NCBI GenBank assembly: GCA_020184695.1
Contig: JAANOX010000038.1
Location: 1 to 9,013, forward strand
Direction: 5' to 3'
From: Histomonas meleagridis 2922-C6/04-290x
Lineage: Eukaryota; Protista; Parabasalia
DNA length: 9,013 nt
Shown: positions 1-9,013 of the stretch, one piece after another
How the letters are laid out: each line of letters starts with the position of its first letter
Position numbering within the stretch: the first letter of the stretch is position 1
Position numbers and translations under genes: made by a program
Notes under the pieces: model-generated
Seen by the model: the letters and a program-made list of their open reading frames with translations, nothing else
Database searches by the model: none
What the model was told of the DNA's origin: nothing

Positions 1-275
1 CATCATTTAGTCAAATCCAAAGCTGAAGTTACTAATCATGATGTTGAACTTGAAAAATCATACAATTAAATCCACAGCTAAAGTTGTTAATCATGATGTT
101 GAAGTAAATCATCATTTAGTCAAATCAATGCTGAAAATTGTTAATCATGATGTTGAAGTTAATCACCATTTAATGAAATCCACAGCTGAAGTTACTAATC
201 ATGATGTTGAAGTCGAAAACCACACTATTAAATCCAAAGCTGAAGTTGTTAGTCATAATGTTGTAGTAAATAAAG
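1..275 (+). repeat. Coding tandem repeat, 54-bp unit (18 aa, KS(T/K)AEV(T/V)NHDVEV(E/N)(N/H)H(T/L)(I/V)), about 5 copies, continuing off the window edge
   Basis: Anchor AATCATGATGTTGAA or a variant recurs at 34, 89, 143, 197 and 251 (spacing 55, 54, 54, 54; the extra base is the A at 53-57). Confidence 0.93.
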
Positions 276-766
276 AAAGAATCGATACCGAAGCAAACGT
301 TCAAGAACTTAGAATCAGGATACACAAAGATGTTCAAACATATGATGTTAAAATTCCTGAAGTTAAAATAAACTATAAAAGCGTCCCTAAACAATTAACT
401 ATTTCTGAAGCTCTTGCTAGAAAATTTAATACTAAAACAACATCAAGTTCGGAAACAAATGATACATATACTTCAGATGATGAATCAGATTCATCTGATT
501 CGTCGGATGAATCAAATACAAACAATAACGATAATTCGGACTCAGATCCTTTTGACGATGAAGAAACAAATGAGATAAATTATGATGAACTAATTGAAGA
601 TGTTAAAAAGATCGAAACGAAACAAGATGTAATAGATCTTATAAATAAATGGAAAAACACAGCTAATGCACCAGGTTGGAAACACGAAGGAACTCACATT
701 TCACAACATCCATTGTTACATATTATGTTACGAGAAAATAAGTGGTGTTACCCAGGTCTTTATCCT

Positions 767-1223
767 TGTCAATGTAAATGCAATAAAGTTCTCCCTTCAG
801 GGAGTGCACTTAGAGCTCATATGGATAAAGAACATGTATGTATAACAGATAAGAATCATATATATGGTTGTATTAAAAATTGTTACAGATCAAAGACATA
901 TATTTTGAAATTAATGAAAATGAAAATAATACGAAATATTATACAAATAATATTATTGTTTGTCCTTGCCCGGGATGTAAATATTTCACCGACGCCTATA
1001 AATCTCTTCTGTCTCACACACGGCATCCCATAAGGAATTCGATAATAATAAAGAAGAATTAGGATGGTATTGGACAATGATAATAACATATGCGAAAACT
1101 AGAAACATCTTACCTAATGCTTTAAACATATTACAAGATAAAAAAGGATTCATTTGTAAAATATGTAATATACATTGGGGTTCAAATAATATTGGTATAG
1201 TTAATCATATTAAAAAGCAACAT
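767..1223 (+). other. Three C2H2 zinc-finger coding segments (N-terminal DNA-binding region of the retroelement)
   Basis: ZF1 767-835 CQCKCNKVLPSGSALRAHMDKEH (C-x3-C-x12-H-x4-H); ZF2 967-1031 CPGCKYFTDAYKSLLSHT(R)ASH after repairing a 1-nt deletion at ~1022; ZF3 1155-1223 CKICNIHWGSNNIGIVNHIKKQH. Confidence 0.8.
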
Positions 1224-2615
1224 CCAAATTTTGATTATGAAGGTGGAGACATTAGATATAGAAGAATTAATTGTAAATCAATCATAAAATTTGGATATCA
1301 ATAAAGATGTACAAGAAAGAATTGATGAAGACATAAATAAAATGAATGAACAAGTTGATAGATATAGGATAGCAACAGAAAGAGAAAGATCAAATGTTAA
1401 AGAAGAACCATTAATTATAAATGTTAGACAACGATTAAATGCTAATAGAAGAAGAATCAGGGAAAACAACTTAAGAGTTAATAGATTAAGAGATCAACAA
1501 CTTAACCAACAAAAATACTAATGAGACAATTAACACAAACATAAATAGTCCACAAACTTCTGAACATGAGGATAATTATAATAGTTCAGAATATAGTTAT
1601 TCTGAAGAAGAATCATCAAGTGACAATAAAGAAGAAACTAATAATACGAATTTAAATATAAATTACCTTAAAAAAATCTTACAAGAGAACAATTATTAGA
1701 AGTAGCAAATAAATGGACTGAAGAATGTAATGAACAAGAACTTCAAATGATCTCATTACCAAAAATTCGGGGAAAGAATAAAACAAAGATCATCAGAGAA
1801 ATCCCCAAACTATTCAAATATATAATAAAACATTTAATTAAAATATGTGAACCATTAAATGATAGACCAGAAGACGAAAACTTTTATATTTGGGAAGGTT
1901 GTTTATCTAAAATCAATCTATTAAATAGAGAAGAAATTTGTAATACTTTAAAAATTACTGGAAATAAAATGTTACATAAAACACAAGGGATAGTTAGAAG
2001 TAACAGAAATAGAGAAATTAATATGGAAATGGAAACAGAAATCAAAAAAATATTTATAAATTTAGCACTATCATTAGAAGAATTCATCACTTCTATCATA
2101 AACAGCAAACACAAATGATATTTAATATGATTAATAGGTTAAAAGATAAACTCATCAAACTTCTACCAAACATCAAAGATGAATTTAGAAATTGCATTGA
2201 AATAAATTTACCCAATGACATTGATAATCTAATGAATATGACAACAGATTATTTAGAAGGTAAACTACAATATATAGAAGCAAGAATTAATACGTTACAA
2301 ACGAATCTAGGAGCTAGAAGAAAAGAGAATTACAAAGATTTAATACAAAACATGTATAGAGAAGATCCTAGAAGATGTCTTAGATGGTATGTTATTCCCA
2401 ATACTACACCAGAATGTAAACTAGAACCAGATAAATTTGTTGAAACATATGGAAGAACATGGAGCCAAGAAAAACTAATAGAAAACAATGAAGAACTTAT
2501 GTCAGATAAAATTATTGAGGCGGAAGATAAACGACAAAGTTATTTAAGAAATAGTTGATATGTTAAAGACTAAACCAGGTTTGAGACCTACTATTTACAT
2601 TGATAATTCAATTAA

Positions 2616-2915
2616 AAAAAAAATAACATCCCAATTCAAAGTGAATTCAGTAATTTACGACATGATATTTGGTTCATTAAAAATAATCAATATTATATTA
2701 TAGAAGTTACTATTCCTTATGGGAACTTTAATGAGAATGATGTTAATTCTCTTGAAATTAGATATACAGGAAAAGTTGATAAATATAAAGATTTATGTAA
2801 TGATATTAGGAATCAAACAAATAAAGAAGTGAACTTTTACGCAATCGTAATTTCTTCTTTAGGTGCTTGGTTTAAGAAATCTTTAGTACATTTAGATACT
2901 TTAGCAGGTTCTTAA
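2616..2915 (+). other. Restriction-like endonuclease (PD-(D/E)xK-type) domain coding segment
   Basis: R-H-D (2658-2666, usually R/K-P-D), 12 residues, E-V-T-I-P-Y (2703-2720), K-x2-K-Y (2772-2786), then I-V-I-S-S-L-G-A-W (2844-2870). Order and spacing match RLEs of R2/R4/NeSL elements. Confidence 0.87.
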
Positions 2916-3287
2916 AGTCTTTTTAAAAGATTTGCTAAAAGAATAACTTTATCCACACTTAGAGAATCTCAAAAGCTCATTACTAATGATTATAATAAAT
3001 TAACTCAAAATAATAGAGATAATAATGCTAACGAGAATAATGTTATACAAGAAGTAGTAAGAGTGCCTGATAATAACATCACACATTCAGATGAAGAAAT
3101 TGATTCATCTGTTCTATCTGATCATGTAGAGATTGACTCTAATCATTTTATCTTATCAGTTCCTTCATCTGATGTCGGACACATGAGCTCCGAAGAGTCG
3201 AATGACTCAAGTCAGGTTACATTAAAGTAGTAATTGGCTTAACTTTGTTCTAGTCAACACATAATTATATAATGATTAATGAATAAA

Positions 3288-3301
3288 CCACACGGGAGGA
3301 G
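3288..3301 (+). pseudogene. 3' fragment (positions 60-73) of a tRNA-Asn gene interrupted by the retrotransposon
   Basis: CCACACGGGAGGAGAT (3288-3303) is identical over 16 nt to 8998-9013, including 2 nt of 3' trailer, and is followed by T runs. Confidence 0.9.
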
Positions 3302-3302
3302 A

Positions 3303-3315
3303 TTTTTCTTTTTTT
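3303..3315 (+). terminator. RNA polymerase III T-run terminator of the interrupted tRNA gene
   Basis: TTTTTCTTTTTTT starting 2 nt after the discriminator base. Confidence 0.7.
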
Positions 3316-3559
3316 CTCATAAAATAAATAACAATTCTTATATTCCCTTATATTTTCTAATATCAAAAGAATATGAATGAGAAATTTAAGAATAAATAAT
3401 TTCCATTATGTTAAAAAATATTAATTTACATAAGATAATGAAAAATTATTCATATTTTGTTAATTGATAAATATATATTATTTCATGAATACTGAGTAAA
3501 TTTCTCTTCTATATAAACAACATTAAATCAATTTTTTCAATAAATCCAATATTCATTCG

Positions 3560-3569
3560 ATAATTTTAG
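3560..3569 (+). repeat. 10-bp target-site duplication ATAATTTTAG, left copy
   Basis: Exact direct repeat of 8650-8659; both copies abut the TIR ends. Confidence 0.85.
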
Positions 3570-3599
3570 GGGAAATCGTATTCAGACGTCGTAACGGTC
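3570..3599 (+). repeat. Left TIR of the Mutator-like element
   Basis: 25/30 inverted match to the split right TIR. Confidence 0.85.
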
Positions 3600-3684
3600 G
3601 CTCGTTCTGAAAAAATTAATATTTATTTCATAGAAATTTTAAAAAAATTTTTTATTACTGTCATTTTACACCTGAAAAAATGAA

Positions 3685-5058
3685 ATGTCAAAATTAAATT
3701 GGAGAAAAAACCATAATGGGACAATCGAAATGCTAAGTATAAATTTAGATAAGAATATTGTCACAATTAAATTTAAATGATTTTTTTTTTCCAATCATTA
3801 TAATCAATGTTAATCAACAAAAATATCGAATTCAAAGTGATAATTATTATTTAAATTATTAAAATAATGATTCAAAATAAAAATTTATGTATTTAAGTTC
3901 AAAATATAAATTAAATCATCTCATTGATTTCATAAGTGCTATTTTCTCATAAAAGAAATACGTTTAATATTTACATTTTTTAAATGCAAAGAAATTCTTA
4001 ATTAAAAAATTCGGATTCATTAACTTCTCGTTACTAAATGCAATGGTTGATGTTAAAATACCAAAAAATTATATTTTGAATATAACAAAAACACAGAGTT
4101 CCACGTTGCAAACAGATCTGACTGTATCAAATTATCATAATGGACATCCTTTCGAAGAAAGACTAAAATTTGAGTTAGAGAGCATTAATTTAGGTCAAAG
4201 TTGTTAGAGTCAACAACATAAAACACCGAATAATTTCATAGAATTTTTAATTAATATAATTGGAACTAAAATTGATAATGATCATCATTTAGTTCGTTAT
4301 ATTAGTAATAAATCTTAATCCATAAGCAACAGACTCTTGAAAAAACATTAAGTCTCTTTATATTTCAAGGGTAATTATTAATGAAAAAGCATATAAATTT
4401 AAAGTACAATCAATTAGATGTATATTCATATAATGGTAAAAAGCTTGGACAATATGCTATTATTGAATTTAATAAAAGATATCAATTATGTTTGACTGAA
4501 AGTGCAAAGCTATTAAATCAAGATCAAAATAGCGTTAGAGAAACATTAAAATTTATTTTTAAAAATAATTGTAATTGTAATAATGAAGATTTATAATGTA
4601 TACATGAAATTTATGAAAGATTAAAAAACCAAAAAAAGGGAGATACTATTTTGAAAGATATAGATATTTATGCTAAATATTTTTATCATGACTTAAAAAT
4701 TGAAAATCCAAATTAAATTGTAATAGTAGAAACAGATGAGAGAGAATACTGAAGTTACAACTCAACAATGGATAAATTAAAACCATATGTTGTTGATCTT
4801 GCACAACGTAATGAACCAGTTCGTTAACTGTTTCGTAATTTTTTTCATGAAGCAGAAAATTTTAAAAAAACCATCGACCCTAATGCCAATGGTATAATTG
4901 TAACTGCAGGATCTCAACCCACTGTCCCATCTGCTACAGTAGACAAGTATTTACCGAAGAAAAAGCGCAGTGCGCACTGCAGTTTCTGCCATAGATTAGG
5001 GCATAATGTAAGTACATGCCCATTCAGAAAAAAAAAAATAATCAGTAAATGCCAATAA
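3685..5058 (+). pseudogene. Decayed ORF (~457 codons) with a SWIM zinc finger and C-terminal CCHC knuckle; MULE transposase-like or cargo protein
   Basis: ATG 3685 (MSKLNWRKNHNG…), shifts at ~3778 and ~4311, then one frame through 5058 with internal stops. SWIM C-x-C-x6-C-x-H at 4570-4605 (CNCNNEDL*CIH); CCHC at 4978-5019 (CSFCHRLGHNVSTC). Weak ES-x-N motif at 4178-4189. Track ORF 4381-4596 is a fragment. Confidence 0.72.
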
Positions 5059-5172
5059 TTTCGATTGTTATATGATTTTTTTTTGATAGAAATTATTAAG
5101 ATTTGTAGATATAATTTGCTTTAACAGATATAATTTGGTTTCATAATTAGGTGTACTATAAGAACAAATTAA

Positions 5173-5317
5173 GATTAAATAAATTGTATTAAATGAAAAA
5201 ATGAGGATTAAATGACTAAATAAGATGTACTAAATGAATAAATGATGATCAAATGACTAAATAAAATGTACTAAATGAAAAAATGATGATCAAATGACTA
5301 AATAGAATGTACCAAAT
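5173..5317. repeat. Minisatellite, 41-bp unit, ~3.5 copies (AAATGACTAAATAAGATGTACTAAATGAATAAATGATGATC)
   Basis: AAATGACTAAATA recurs at 5210, 5251 and 5292, with a diverged upstream copy from ~5173. Confidence 0.9.
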
Positions 5318-5596
5318 TAAATGATTAAAATTGAATAACTATATTGATGGAAAATTGGTGTATTTGTATGCTTGTGTGTTTGTTGTGGCCATCATGGTTT
5401 GAAAACATTTGAACGGTTCATAATATCAAAAACTTTGCTTTTTGACGAGCAGGCGACCGTTAAACGATATCTTTTTTTTATGTTTCTAAAGTTCCATCGT
5501 AGATCAGGTTTTAATTAGCGGTCGATGATATGACCAAAAAAAATACGCGGGGTTTTTTTGGTAAATGATTTGACGCGGAAAATAACCGTTCCCCGA

Positions 5597-5617
5597 GAAC
5601 GTTACGACATCTAAATA
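5597..5617 (-). repeat. Inner part of the right TIR of the Mutator-like element, ending in the TA used by the nested element
   Basis: Reverse complement TATTTAGATGTCGTAACGTTC matches 3579-3599 at 18/21. Confidence 0.85.
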
Positions 5618-5896
5618 CCCTGAAAAATATTAAGAATTTCAAGTTTGTGCTATTTGAATAGCCATTCAATTTTCAATGGAAAATGGTGACGTTTTGATCC
5701 CTCATATTTTTGAATGAAAAAATATTTTAAATTTTAAGAATTGAATGGAGTTCAATGTCAAAATTTTATTGACAAATTGACAATTTTGTAGTCAATTTGC
5801 CAGAAGAATTTTGAATTTCATCATCATTTATTGAAGTTCCGAGCGGTGACTGCAGCACCGTGAGCATCTTCAATGAATGAATAAAAAAAGATGATC

Positions 5897-6145
5897 AAGA
5901 AGAAGAAGAAAAAGAAGGAAGGAAAAGTCGGAAGATGAAGAAAAAGAAAGAAGAAAACAAGAAGGAAAAGATGGGAAAGACAGAAGAAGAAGGAAAAGAA
6001 AGAAGAAAACAGATAGGAAAAGACAAAAGAAGAAGGAAAAGAAAAAAGAAAACAAGACGGTAAAAATGGAAGAAGAAGAAAAAAAAAAGAAAAAATGGAA
6101 CAAGAAAAAAAAAGAAAACAAGAAGAAAAAAAAAAAAAAGAAAAA
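5897..6145 (+). repeat. Purine-rich (GA/A) low-complexity tract with degenerate ~45-50-bp units
   Basis: About 16 pyrimidines in 249 nt by hand count; GAAGAAGGAAAAGAAAGAAGAAAAC-like unit near 5936, 5985 and 6029. Confidence 0.85.
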
Positions 6146-6316
6146 TAAATCAATAAAAGCCGAAAAATGGATTCCTTATTTCGATTAACAAATTTAGGTA
6201 AATTTTATGCGTAATTCAAATAAAAATCATTAAATTGATTAAATTTCTTATTTTTGGTTATTCGATTCAAATTAAAATTTAAATTTGTTATATATAAAAA
6301 AGTCGACTTGGAAATT

Positions 6317-7925
6317 ATGTCTTGGATCGAAGAACAAATTTGAATGATATGCAAAAAGAAGCAGGAAGACCCGAAAGCCAGTTGGGAAACAATTAAAAAT
6401 CGGCTAGAATGGTATTCACCAGTATTTAAGCATTTTGAATCAAAGATATAAATGCCTATCTATATGCTAATGCAAAACTGGTCCAAGAGCCGATTGATTT
6501 CTGGATACAAAATGAAGACATACATTATATTGATATGAATCGTTATTTTTATCGCCATAAAGGACCGAGACAATCAATTAAATATGACAAATGGACACCA
6601 GAAGAAGAAAAATTATTCATAAAATTAATTAACTAAGCTATCGAAGATAAAAGTTTGAGTGATGATGGATCATGGGGCATATTTTCTATTCGAGTTCCAT
6701 ACAGAGTTGGTGATCAATGTTATAACAAATACATTTAACTCTTTAGAAAGAATTTAGTACCAAAATTGTCAGAAAGAACAGATATAATGGTGTCGCATGA
6801 CTTCAGGCGTGCCTTTTCAAAGCACCAAGAATAAGTAATCTCAAAAGAAATACAAAAAAGAATCGAAAATGGTGAGGGTATTTCAATTAGAGAATGTCAA
6901 AAAATCTACACGATTGCTATTATGATTCACATGTAATGGCAAAAAGGGCTGCTGAACTTATAGCTATATAAGATGGAATTCAAATGTATAACAATGATGG
7001 ACATAAAACCAATGAATTTTTGGATTTATATAATTATACTTTTGATCTCGCTAATAATGAGCCACAACTCTTATTGGAAGAGGCAGATATGCCAAATTTT
7101 ATTTGATGCATCAAGGCACTTTGTAGAAGAATTTATTAGAAGAAACAATTTCTCCTTGAGGAAACCACATGTTTCTCGGAGAGGACAATTAAAGGTAGAA
7201 GAAGTTGATCATTTTCTGAAGACGCTTAGTGATGCAATACAACAATATGGTTCAGATAATGTATTCAACATGGATGAAACATCAGTTAGGATTGCATATT
7301 ATCCTGACAAAGTCATTGGAGTTGTTGATTCTGATTCAGTACATGTTGATACAAATATAAATTTAAAAGAATATTTCGCTGCTATCATGACATGTACGAG
7401 AAACAAGCTATATCCACCGATAATACTTGCAAAAGGCAAGACAGAGAAATGCACTAAGAAGTTTAAGCTCAAAGAAAATAACATCATTGAACACTATGTT
7501 TGGCGTTCTGATTATGGACTGATGAAAATGTTGTGAAGAGATATCTTTCCTTTCTCCATGAAATTCATCCTGAACCTTGTGTTCTTGTTCTAGATTCATT
7601 TAGAGCACATATCACAGGAAACGTACTCCAAATTGCTCGGGATTTGGGAATCACTATTATCCAAGTTCCAGCAAATGGAACAGGAAAATATCAACCCCTC
7701 GATAGGCGAATATTTGGGATCGTAAAATCAAGGTTAAGAAATAATCTTGGGAAAAGAAATAATGAATGTGCGAAAAATAGGTGGTCTGTAGCATTAAAAT
7801 GTCTACTCATTGCATGGAATTCAATTACCAAAGAAGCGCTTGAATCTGCATGGTCAATTCCTGGTTTACTCGAAGAGAATCCTTTTGTTCCACGTGATGA
7901 TAACGAATTTGAGTATCTGATATAA
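6317..7925 (+). pseudogene. pogo-like transposase pseudogene: Myb/SANT domain + Tc5/CENP-B-type HTH + DDE_1-type catalytic domain (DD35D)
   Basis: ATG 6317. Myb 6592-6745 (WTPEEEKLF…WGIFSIRVPYRVGDQCYNKY). HTH-end motif FDASRHFVEEFIRRNNFSLRKP (~7100-7176). Catalytic D at 7273 (NVFNMDET), 7593 (VLVLDSFRAH) and 7701 (YQPLD), 35 residues between D2 and D3. Stops at 6341, 6634, 6736, 6832 and ~6970; shifts at ~6445, ~6905, ~7100 and ~7517. Confidence 0.9.
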
Positions 7926-8638
7926 GAAGAAAACTAATCACCAAAAATAAAAAAAAAAAAGTAAAAAAAAAAAAATGAGATGAAAAACGGTTGTTTGATG
8001 TGTTAATTGAAAAAGTCAAATTGATATTGAAAAATTGAGAATTATGATAATTCAAAAAGTGGAATGACCGTTAAACACTGGTGATTAGAAAAGATGGTTT
8101 AATTTCAAATAAGTCAAAAATAAAATCAAAAAACTTTATACAAAAATTAAAGAGTGAATTGTGTAGAATATGTCTTTTGAAGGACAATGGAAAATTTCCA
8201 TCAGATGAGTAAAAAAAATCTATTTATATATGCTCATTTTATGATTTTTTATAGCAAAATAGAAAATGAATAATCTTATTTTAATCTGCTCAAAATAGGG
8301 ATTATTTTGGTATCATTGAATTAATCATATCTTGTACCATATTGGAGAAAACGATTTTTAAAAATTAAAAAAAATGCATGAAATAATTAAAATCCAAATT
8401 TTTATTATAAAATTCATCCCTACATAAACATCAATTTATGGTCCAAATAGCTAAGCTTTTTTCTATTTGGATGAATCAAATAATGAATTTAGATACGGAA
8501 AATTCATTGGCTGGGTTCAAACGTACAAAAGTAAAATTGGCGGGACGGTTATGCCAGTAAATTGAAAAGGTTCAGCCTTCAAATTTGGCACTTTTTATCC
8601 AAATTGCGCAAATATGGAATTTTTAAGATTTTTCAGGG

Positions 8639-8659
8639 TACGATTCTCCATAATTTTAG
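8639..8659. repeat. Duplicated TA, outer end of the Mutator-like right TIR (8641-8649) and right copy of the 10-bp TSD (8650-8659)
   Basis: TACGATTCTCC reverse-complements to GGAGAATCGTA versus left GGGAAATCGTA (9/11), followed by ATAATTTTAG. Confidence 0.85.
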
Positions 8660-8937: not shown

Positions 8938-9011
8938 TCCTCCCTAACTCAGTTGGTTAGAGTGTCAGACTGTTAATCTGGAAGTCGTGTGTTCGAGCCA
9001 CACGGGAGGAG
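8938..9011 (+). tRNA. tRNA-Asn-GTT: tRNA-Asn (anticodon GTT), 74 nt, intronless, CCA not encoded
   Basis: Acceptor TCCTCCC/GGGAGGA; D-stem ACTC/GAGT; anticodon stem TCAGA/TCTGG with loop CTGTTAA (GTT at 8972-8974); T-stem GTGTG/CACAC with loop TTCGAGC; discriminator G9011. Confidence 0.96.
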
Positions 9012-9013
9012 AT

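Follow-up and report, generated by a model that had tools for sequence, protein, structure and literature searches.

The first 3287 nucleotides of the Histomonas meleagridis sequence analysed here appear to be a dead, distal copy of an R2-like non-LTR retrotransposon family that integrates only into tRNA-Asn(GTT) genes and rebuilds its target through a 15-bp duplication, a reading of the sequence comparisons to which we assign a probability of roughly 85%. The window, i.e., the whole stretch of DNA that was analysed, is the complete 9013-bp contig C38 of a 43-Mb assembly that consists of 281 contigs and has a G+C content of 27.5%. Sister copies elsewhere in this assembly encode the domains that the copy in the window has lost, and their 3' ends meet the same nucleotide of the same tRNA gene in several diverged lineages.

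The junction with the target tRNA gene

Within the window, the 16-mer CCACACGGGAGGAGAT is found at 3288-3303 and at 8998-9013 and nowhere else, and shuffled sequences would be expected to contain none. The second occurrence closes the one intact tRNA-Asn(GTT) gene detected by ARAGORN and Rfam (8937/8938-9011/9012, 61.7 bits), and the first follows directly upon the last bases of the element, ...TTAATGAATAAA, the final one of which is at position 3287. A T5-C-T7 run comes immediately after the first 16-mer and extends to 3315. In the Rfam alignment, this tRNA has a T stem of GUGUG/CACAC and a T loop of UUCGAGC, which puts the break GTTCGAG/CCACAC at standard positions 59/60, within the B box. 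The original prediction had claimed an exact identity between the 16-mer and the end of the intact tRNA gene, a junction at tRNA positions 59/60 and a Pol III terminator behind the 16-mer, and on all three points it was borne out. Short-read contigs from two DNA samples match the 3' junction and its flank (3070-3299 and 3278-3682), none of them with 31 nt on both sides of it. The features of the window that bear on the element and its target are collected in Table 1.

Table 1. Features of the retroelement copy and of the tRNA-Asn sequences in the 9013-bp window
Feature	Positions	Strand	Identity or basis
5' segment of element; contig begins within it; frame broken several times	1-2530	+	99.2% identity to C235 element (L064 2678-5208)
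Five copies of a 54-bp (18-codon) tandem repeat in the N-terminal coding region	1-271	+	
C2H2 zinc finger 1, frame 2	761-835	+	
C2H2-type zinc finger 2, frame 1	961-1026	+	
C2H2-type zinc finger 3, frame 3	1149-1223	+	
Segment immediately N-terminal of RT core; RT core absent after it	2313-2528	+	44% identity to RT-query residues 4-94
Chimeric breakpoint, C235a-type to W-type, at AAGAT microhomology (5 bp)	2526-2533	+	
3' segment, W lineage	2533-3287	+	92-95% identity to copies on C167, C30 and C49
Restriction-like endonuclease (RLE) core, PD-(D/E)xK, motifs RHD...IIEVT...KVDKYK	2658-2885	+	Homologous segment of sister copy aligns to RLE of solved R2 proteins
Premature TAA stop within nuclease-domain frame	2913-2915	+	
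TAG stop closing acidic, Ser-rich C-terminal tail	3228-3230	+	
57-nt 3' UTR, last bases AATGAATAAA	3231-3287	+	
Downstream copy of proposed 15-bp target-site duplication, comprising tRNA-Asn nt 60-73 and the first base of the trailer	3288-3302	+	
T-rich native trailer, Pol III terminator of targeted tRNA gene; then unique flank	3303-3315	+	
Second, intact tRNA-Asn(GTT) gene; contig end two bases later	8938-9011	+	ARAGORN, Rfam

Structure of the copy in the window

Translated with the standard code, positions 1-3230 constitute one long coding region with several frame changes. The 54-bp tandem repeat at its beginning differs in copy number among read sets, and an acidic, Ser-rich stretch lies between these repeats and the C2H2 fingers. 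Three such fingers are present, as weak Pfam matches that fall below the curated cut-offs; a basic coiled region occupies the interval between them and the segment that begins at 2313. The C235 element that serves as reference for the 5' segment adjoins the 3' side of an intact tRNA-Asn gene. For the W-type segment, the identity of 92-95% to other copies holds as far as position 3315, and its terminal motif is common to most lineages.

The switch from one lineage to the other falls right after the CCHC-coding stretch of W and right before the RT core of the C235 type, and the RT core, the linker and the CCHC knuckle are all missing at the joint, which is represented by one assembled copy only. 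The copy in the window combines two lineages, is internally deleted and carries at least one premature stop; it has neither RT nor CCHC and cannot move by itself. An R2/NeSL-type RLE element had been proposed at 3231-3315. As a description of the family this holds, with an RLE core in the window and RT and CCHC in sister copies; as a description of the window copy it does not, for want of the latter two domains. C30 carries a second internally deleted hybrid (L071 840-3089), stacked behind the 3' end of another element. Its 5' part (~800 nt) is of C42 type and gives way, at ~1653/1663, to W-type sequence that lies beyond the RT.

The read evidence that bears on this copy is at the level of assembled contigs, and the RNA label of two of the four runs (X4 and X6) is a guess. 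A possibly-RNA contig of X4 spans the chimeric joint (1620-2589), and other contigs of the guessed-RNA run cover 1-1300 and 2801-3072, not the flank at 3200-4000, a pattern that fits transcription of element sequence and is no proof of it. All four runs have indels of 1-2 nt relative to the window at 874, 1511, 1670 and 2044, near frame changes, and also at 53, 125 and 134; because indels lie beside frame changes in every run, some of the frameshifts in the window may be assembly errors or differences between paralogues. An extra C at 1025 was seen in run X6 only. A loose end at 2530 runs on into full-length C235-type sequence. Over 2600-3400 the summed depth, which does not equal copy number, is 10-20x that of the unique flank, and this hints at more W-type 3' ends than have been assembled.

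Domain content of sister copies and assignment of the family

In sister copies, Pfam detects RVT_1 with E values of 1e-28 on C42, 5e-34 on C175 and 2e-27 on C235, and the best relatives among solved RTs are the R2 proteins (E 1.6e-32, as against ~1e-18 for LINE-1 ORF2p). In a 909-aa open frame on C175, the last ~230 residues can be aligned with the CCHC and RLE of the R2 structures 9nl3 and 9dou (E 6e-9; residues 214-445 of the C175 copy against residues 923-1142 of 9nl3 give E 5.6e-9), with the motifs C..C..H..C, (K/R)PD, (D/E)V(T) and K..KY in register between this copy and both structures. These matches of RT, CCHC and RLE assign the family to the RLE-type, R2-like non-LTR retrotransposons. 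The order of domains in the sister copies is N-terminal C2H2 fingers, RT, CCHC knuckle and RLE. Besides the 15-bp target duplication no terminal repeats (LTRs or TIRs) were seen. Pfam gave no Myb match in the part of the frame-broken N-terminal ORF pieces that was scanned, no Ulp1-like protease or other peptidase domain in the scanned pieces and no match to the large extra N-terminal region.

A search for homologues returned 12 unnamed proteins, the best of them 51-55% identical, and the closest two are encoded on contigs of 1.9-2.3 kb without junctions; matches in the protein atlas were to generic RVT_1 clusters only. Within the assembly, further R2-like RT copies are abundant (C280:612943, C56:1130, C227:113883, C11:481052, C20:1685 and others). 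The one on C20, with 63% identity to the query, is part of a 1461-aa open frame, and more distant RT families (34-44% identity) have open frames of up to 1543 aa. Since these further copies have no tRNA-Asn 15-mer nearby, they may have other targets.

Target specificity across the genome

The exact 16-mer is present in 25 copies in the genome, 13 of which belong to whole tRNA-Asn genes and 12 of which stand without the tRNA 5' part; there are, besides, at least two degenerate orphan copies (C175:8714 and C124:7326). Every orphan 16-mer is directly preceded by the 3' end of an element, in 11 cases ending ...AATAAA with 3-5 terminal A residues and in one case ...AATAGAC. In all, at least 14 independent-looking 3' junctions share one nucleotide; they have differing downstream flanks and represent at least five diverged lineages, whose RTs are 53-63% identical and whose 3' UTRs cannot be aligned between lineages. 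When the survey is made from the nuclease domain, the 15-mer lies 189-322 bp downstream on the same strand in 11 of the 14 RLE copies with at least 49% identity to the query; two of the others are cut by contig ends and the third, a close copy at C124:41189, has no 15-mer within 2 mismatches, so that the proportion among assessable copies is 11 of 12. Of the W-type 3' ends, three could be assessed, and each of them abuts the 16-mer. Among distant-family RLE copies (at most 41% identity) no 15-mer was found nearby.

The proposal of a site-specific RLE family aimed at the T loop of tRNA-Asn had been made from the single junction in the window, with the caveat that one junction could not prove specificity; the 14 or more junctions at one nucleotide answer that caveat. 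The copy numbers are lower bounds, since the assembly breaks at elements. Contigs stop in or immediately behind a tRNA-Asn gene, or the 15-mer of one, at C38:9013 (the second tRNA gene of the window), C114:1644, C178:874, C11:793119 and C42:394765, and for contigs C54, C58, C236, C268, C167 and C174 the end falls within the RT of the youngest (~97% identical) lineage. Contig ends at the tRNA-Asn genes of C38, C114, C178 and C11, in the window only two bases past the gene, are to be expected if repeated elements come next.

The 5' side of the elements and their head-to-tail arrays

An orphan 5' half of the tRNA had been predicted upstream of the element, and none exists among the matches to the tRNA 5' part, all 15 of which represent either whole tRNAs or sequence truncated at a contig end; it is a complete tRNA-Asn gene that precedes the element. 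The tRNA-Asn loci on C54, C58, C6, C271, C236 and C268 have unique upstream flanks, and from the tRNA onward they have at least 1.5 kb in common at ~97% identity. On C58, C236, C54 and C268 the sequence behind the tRNA reaches RT coding sequence 3.4-3.6 kb downstream, where the contigs end, and this continuity from tRNA into RT places an element directly behind a complete tRNA. Such a position, together with the 15-bp direct repeat of the tRNA end, indicates that the gene is regenerated and not destroyed. Ten of the 11 assessable tRNA-Asn genes are occupied in this way; the unoccupied one is on C87, where the downstream 1.5 kb matches no element.

Several loci carry more than one unit. The array on C174 reads tRNA, X, 15-mer, X, 15-mer, main element, with X denoting a shorter element described below, and that on C181 has one X fewer; on C235 the tRNA is followed by a 6.15-kb element, the 15-mer and the next element, and C175 has at least four stacked units. 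Internal units are preceded by the 15-mer alone and never by a whole tRNA. The repeat in the X arrays is exactly CCACACGGGAGGAGA (15 bp), and the base that follows it is the A of the element's ATG, not the native T. The structure of the product is tRNA(1-59)+[60-74]+element+[60-74]+native trailer, a duplication that is read across separate loci and arrays, in contigs that break inside elements, and not at one insertion that has unique sequence on either side and an empty counterpart. Across their 74 nt, the 15 tRNA-Asn copies differ at one site only, linear position 60 (standard 59), where four of them, all at occupied loci, are variant (G>T on C156, C236 and C268, three loci with unique flanks; G>A on C6). 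Judged from its location, this variation may be a scar left where the gap at the nick was filled and ligated.

The ~110-137 nt that follow the tRNA are conserved. A ribozyme or structured leader was considered for this stretch and rejected: Rfam found nothing in it at the gathering threshold or at E values up to 10, and RNAalifold gave -6.7 kcal/mol with almost no covariation. The conservation is explained instead by coding, as the ATG of the ORF lies 0-15 nt past the 15-mer. In X and the second C235 element it directly abuts the 15-mer (GGAGA/ATGAAT), in other lineages it lies 7-15 nt further on, and the N-terminal peptide is kept across lineages. The X element (L068 2179-7471 on C174; L069 on C181) is 2.6 kb in length and has two ORFs, without RT or nuclease; C174 has it in two tandem copies and C181 in one, and its ATG directly follows the 15-bp duplication. 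In the N-terminal region it shares 27-34% identity with the RT-bearing elements, and with this relatedness and no enzymatic domains X looks like a non-autonomous partner.

Proposed mechanism of integration and alternatives

Setting out from the observed junction positions, repeat structure, domain content and chimerism, we infer the order and exact positions of two nicks, target-primed reverse transcription (TPRT) and retargeting as the source of the arrays. The first cut made by the element protein would fall in the bottom strand at T-loop positions 59/60, and the freed 3' OH would prime reverse transcription of the element RNA, the 3' end of which would be ...AAUGAAUAAA. A second nick would be made in the top strand ~15 nt downstream, one base past the discriminator. 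In the observed product, the repeated 15-mer restores a complete tRNA gene upstream of the element, and the T-rich start of the element provides the rebuilt gene with a new Pol III terminator. A target rebuilt in this manner can be hit again, which would give rise to head-to-tail arrays behind one tRNA. The hybrid in the window consists of a C235a-type 5' part and a W-type 3' part that are joined at the 5-bp microhomology.

The alternative that survives best, and which we consider improbable, is that the target is nicked after trailer base 75 and the element integrates precisely where the tRNA gene ends, without any duplication; the 15-mer would then be a tRNA-derived tail of the element's own RNA, which might pair with the target and so guide priming. 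Integration of this kind would leave the same DNA, letter for letter, as a 15-bp duplication; the 15-mer is invariant across lineages with diverged 3' UTRs, and for R2 it has been discussed that the RNA may read through into target sequence at its 3' end. The position-59 variants are the sole evidence that separates duplication from such a tail: with a nick 15 nt away there would be no reason for the only variable base of the tRNA to adjoin 59/60, nor for all four variants to occur at occupied loci. Set against the tail as well is the number of A residues before the 15-mer, which ranges from 3 to 5 as expected at a priming junction.

Considerably less probable still is that the element brings the tRNA-Asn gene along as a 5' module that supplies a Pol III promoter, with the 15-mer as a short terminal direct repeat and with insertion taking place regardless of tRNA genes. 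Homology between occupied loci does begin at the tRNA and not after it, and there is an element behind nearly every tRNA-Asn copy, but the 15-mer is all of the tRNA that precedes internal array members, the tRNA is 100% identical among five lineages whose RTs have diverged to 53-63% identity, and the unoccupied tRNA-Asn gene on C87 has the same upstream CAGACT motif. The least credible alternative, a single old insertion beside tRNA-Asn that was spread by segmental duplication without any target specificity, could draw on the ~97% identical tRNA-plus-element sequence at several loci and on the resemblance of C174 and C181 to duplicates or haplotigs, but it founders on the unique upstream flanks at six loci, on the differing downstream flanks and on lineages ~40-47% apart in RT protein, with unalignable 3' UTRs, that join at the same nucleotide.

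Under target-site duplication, the preferred reading, the proximity of the ORF to the tRNA may be of some consequence. With a start 0-15 nt after the tRNA, processing of a co-transcript by RNase Z could make the 5' end of the mRNA, replacing the 5' ribozyme of R2; co-transcription with the tRNA and 3' tRNA processing as the source of a near-leaderless mRNA 5' end is offered as an idea prompted by the layout of the loci. A broader and quite speculative conjecture, which we regard as possible and rather doubtful, is that the tRNA-Asn lineage is one branch of an R2-like radiation in which each branch is specific for a different tRNA species, rebuilds its target by a tailored duplication and uses the regenerated tRNA as an expression or processing signal.

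Relation to other site-specific elements

The family shares with R2 (structures 8gh6, 9dou, 9nl2 and 9nl3) its best RT match, the order of its domains, alignable RLE motifs and a precise 3' junction at a multicopy RNA gene, and both have internally deleted and hybrid non-autonomous derivatives. R2 SIDEs are short internally deleted R2 and R2/R1 hybrid elements, and the copies in the window and on C30 are similar to them in that they keep 5' and 3' ends without the enzymatic middle and combine parts from two lineages. The differences lie in the target, since R2 inserts in 28S rDNA and inactivates the rDNA unit whereas here the tRNA gene would be restored by the 15-bp duplication; in the N-terminus, where the family has a large extra region; and in the 5' ribozyme, which R2 has and which was not detected here. 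In R2 proper a Myb domain comes after the zinc fingers; the N-terminal pieces that were scanned here, from frame-broken copies, gave no Myb match. Elements such as Dictyostelium TRE and Ty3 are tethered to Pol III factors and insert at a variable distance beside any tRNA gene, whereas here every junction is at the same nucleotide of one tRNA species.

Members of the NeSL clade have a spliced-leader target and a Ulp1-like protease, whereas the present family has a tRNA-Asn target and no peptidase in the scanned pieces. Published RLE elements specific for tRNA genes include NeSL-1_TV in tRNA-Pro of Trichomonas vaginalis and two planarian elements, LIN15_SM in tRNA-Arg and LIN25_SM in tRNA-Glu (PMC4640811), which makes the targeting of tRNA genes less novel than was assumed initially. 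YURE, named at that time as a precedent in tRNA-Arg, was a mistaken choice, for it prefers U2-derived satellites (PMC4640811). The three published elements resemble the present family as RLE-type non-LTR elements that are sequence-specific for one tRNA gene family, and NeSL-1_TV is likewise from a parabasalid; the target here is tRNA-Asn(GTT), the comparison being one of published target descriptions. Our literature search found no published report of tRNA-Asn-specific RLE elements or of such elements in Histomonas.

Utopia, an RLE LINE related to NeSL with one to three N-terminal zinc fingers, is similar in its use of a small multicopy RNA gene. It is specific for U2 snRNA genes, and its reptile families make 20-bp duplications (PMC4640811), a precedent for staggered cuts of such size; it differs from the present family in its target gene, and specificity here looks strict (11 of 12 assessable copies). 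The Dada-tN DNA transposons of fish are specific for tRNA-Asn (PMC8869645) and hence exploit the same isoacceptor family as a safe multicopy target, but they are DDE-transposase DNA transposons, not retroelements, and their mechanism is unrelated.

The tRNA-Asn T loop at 59/60 would thus add a strictly site-specific target to the short list of tRNA-directed RLE retrotransposons. It also appears that an element can fill nearly all copies of an essential gene family (10 of 11 assessable) without harm, provided that a staggered cut duplicates and restores the 3' end of the gene. Lineages with RTs 53-63% identical that insert at the same nucleotide constitute a natural series for asking which parts of the protein read the target, a question that matters for the engineering of R2-type enzymes for site-specific insertion.

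Other features of the window

Downstream of the targeted tRNA fragment, the block at 3570-5620 has motifs that match in inverted orientation near 3574-3600 and 5585-5615, and between them a stop-interrupted ORF (~4020-5030) that ends in a CCHC-like knuckle; it may be a remnant of another transposon, and its piece at 4381-4593 had no Pfam match. A 41-bp tandem repeat lies at 5176-5321 (3.6 copies, 89% matches). The adjacent 5616-8640 looks like a pogo/Tigger-like DNA transposon, with 45-nt inverted terminal repeats at 5616-5660 and 8596-8640 that are 82% complementary and a frame-broken transposase ORF in which DDE_1 is matched at 7533-7922 (E 3e-11). A long, purine-rich (AAG)n-like tract occupies 5897-6149.
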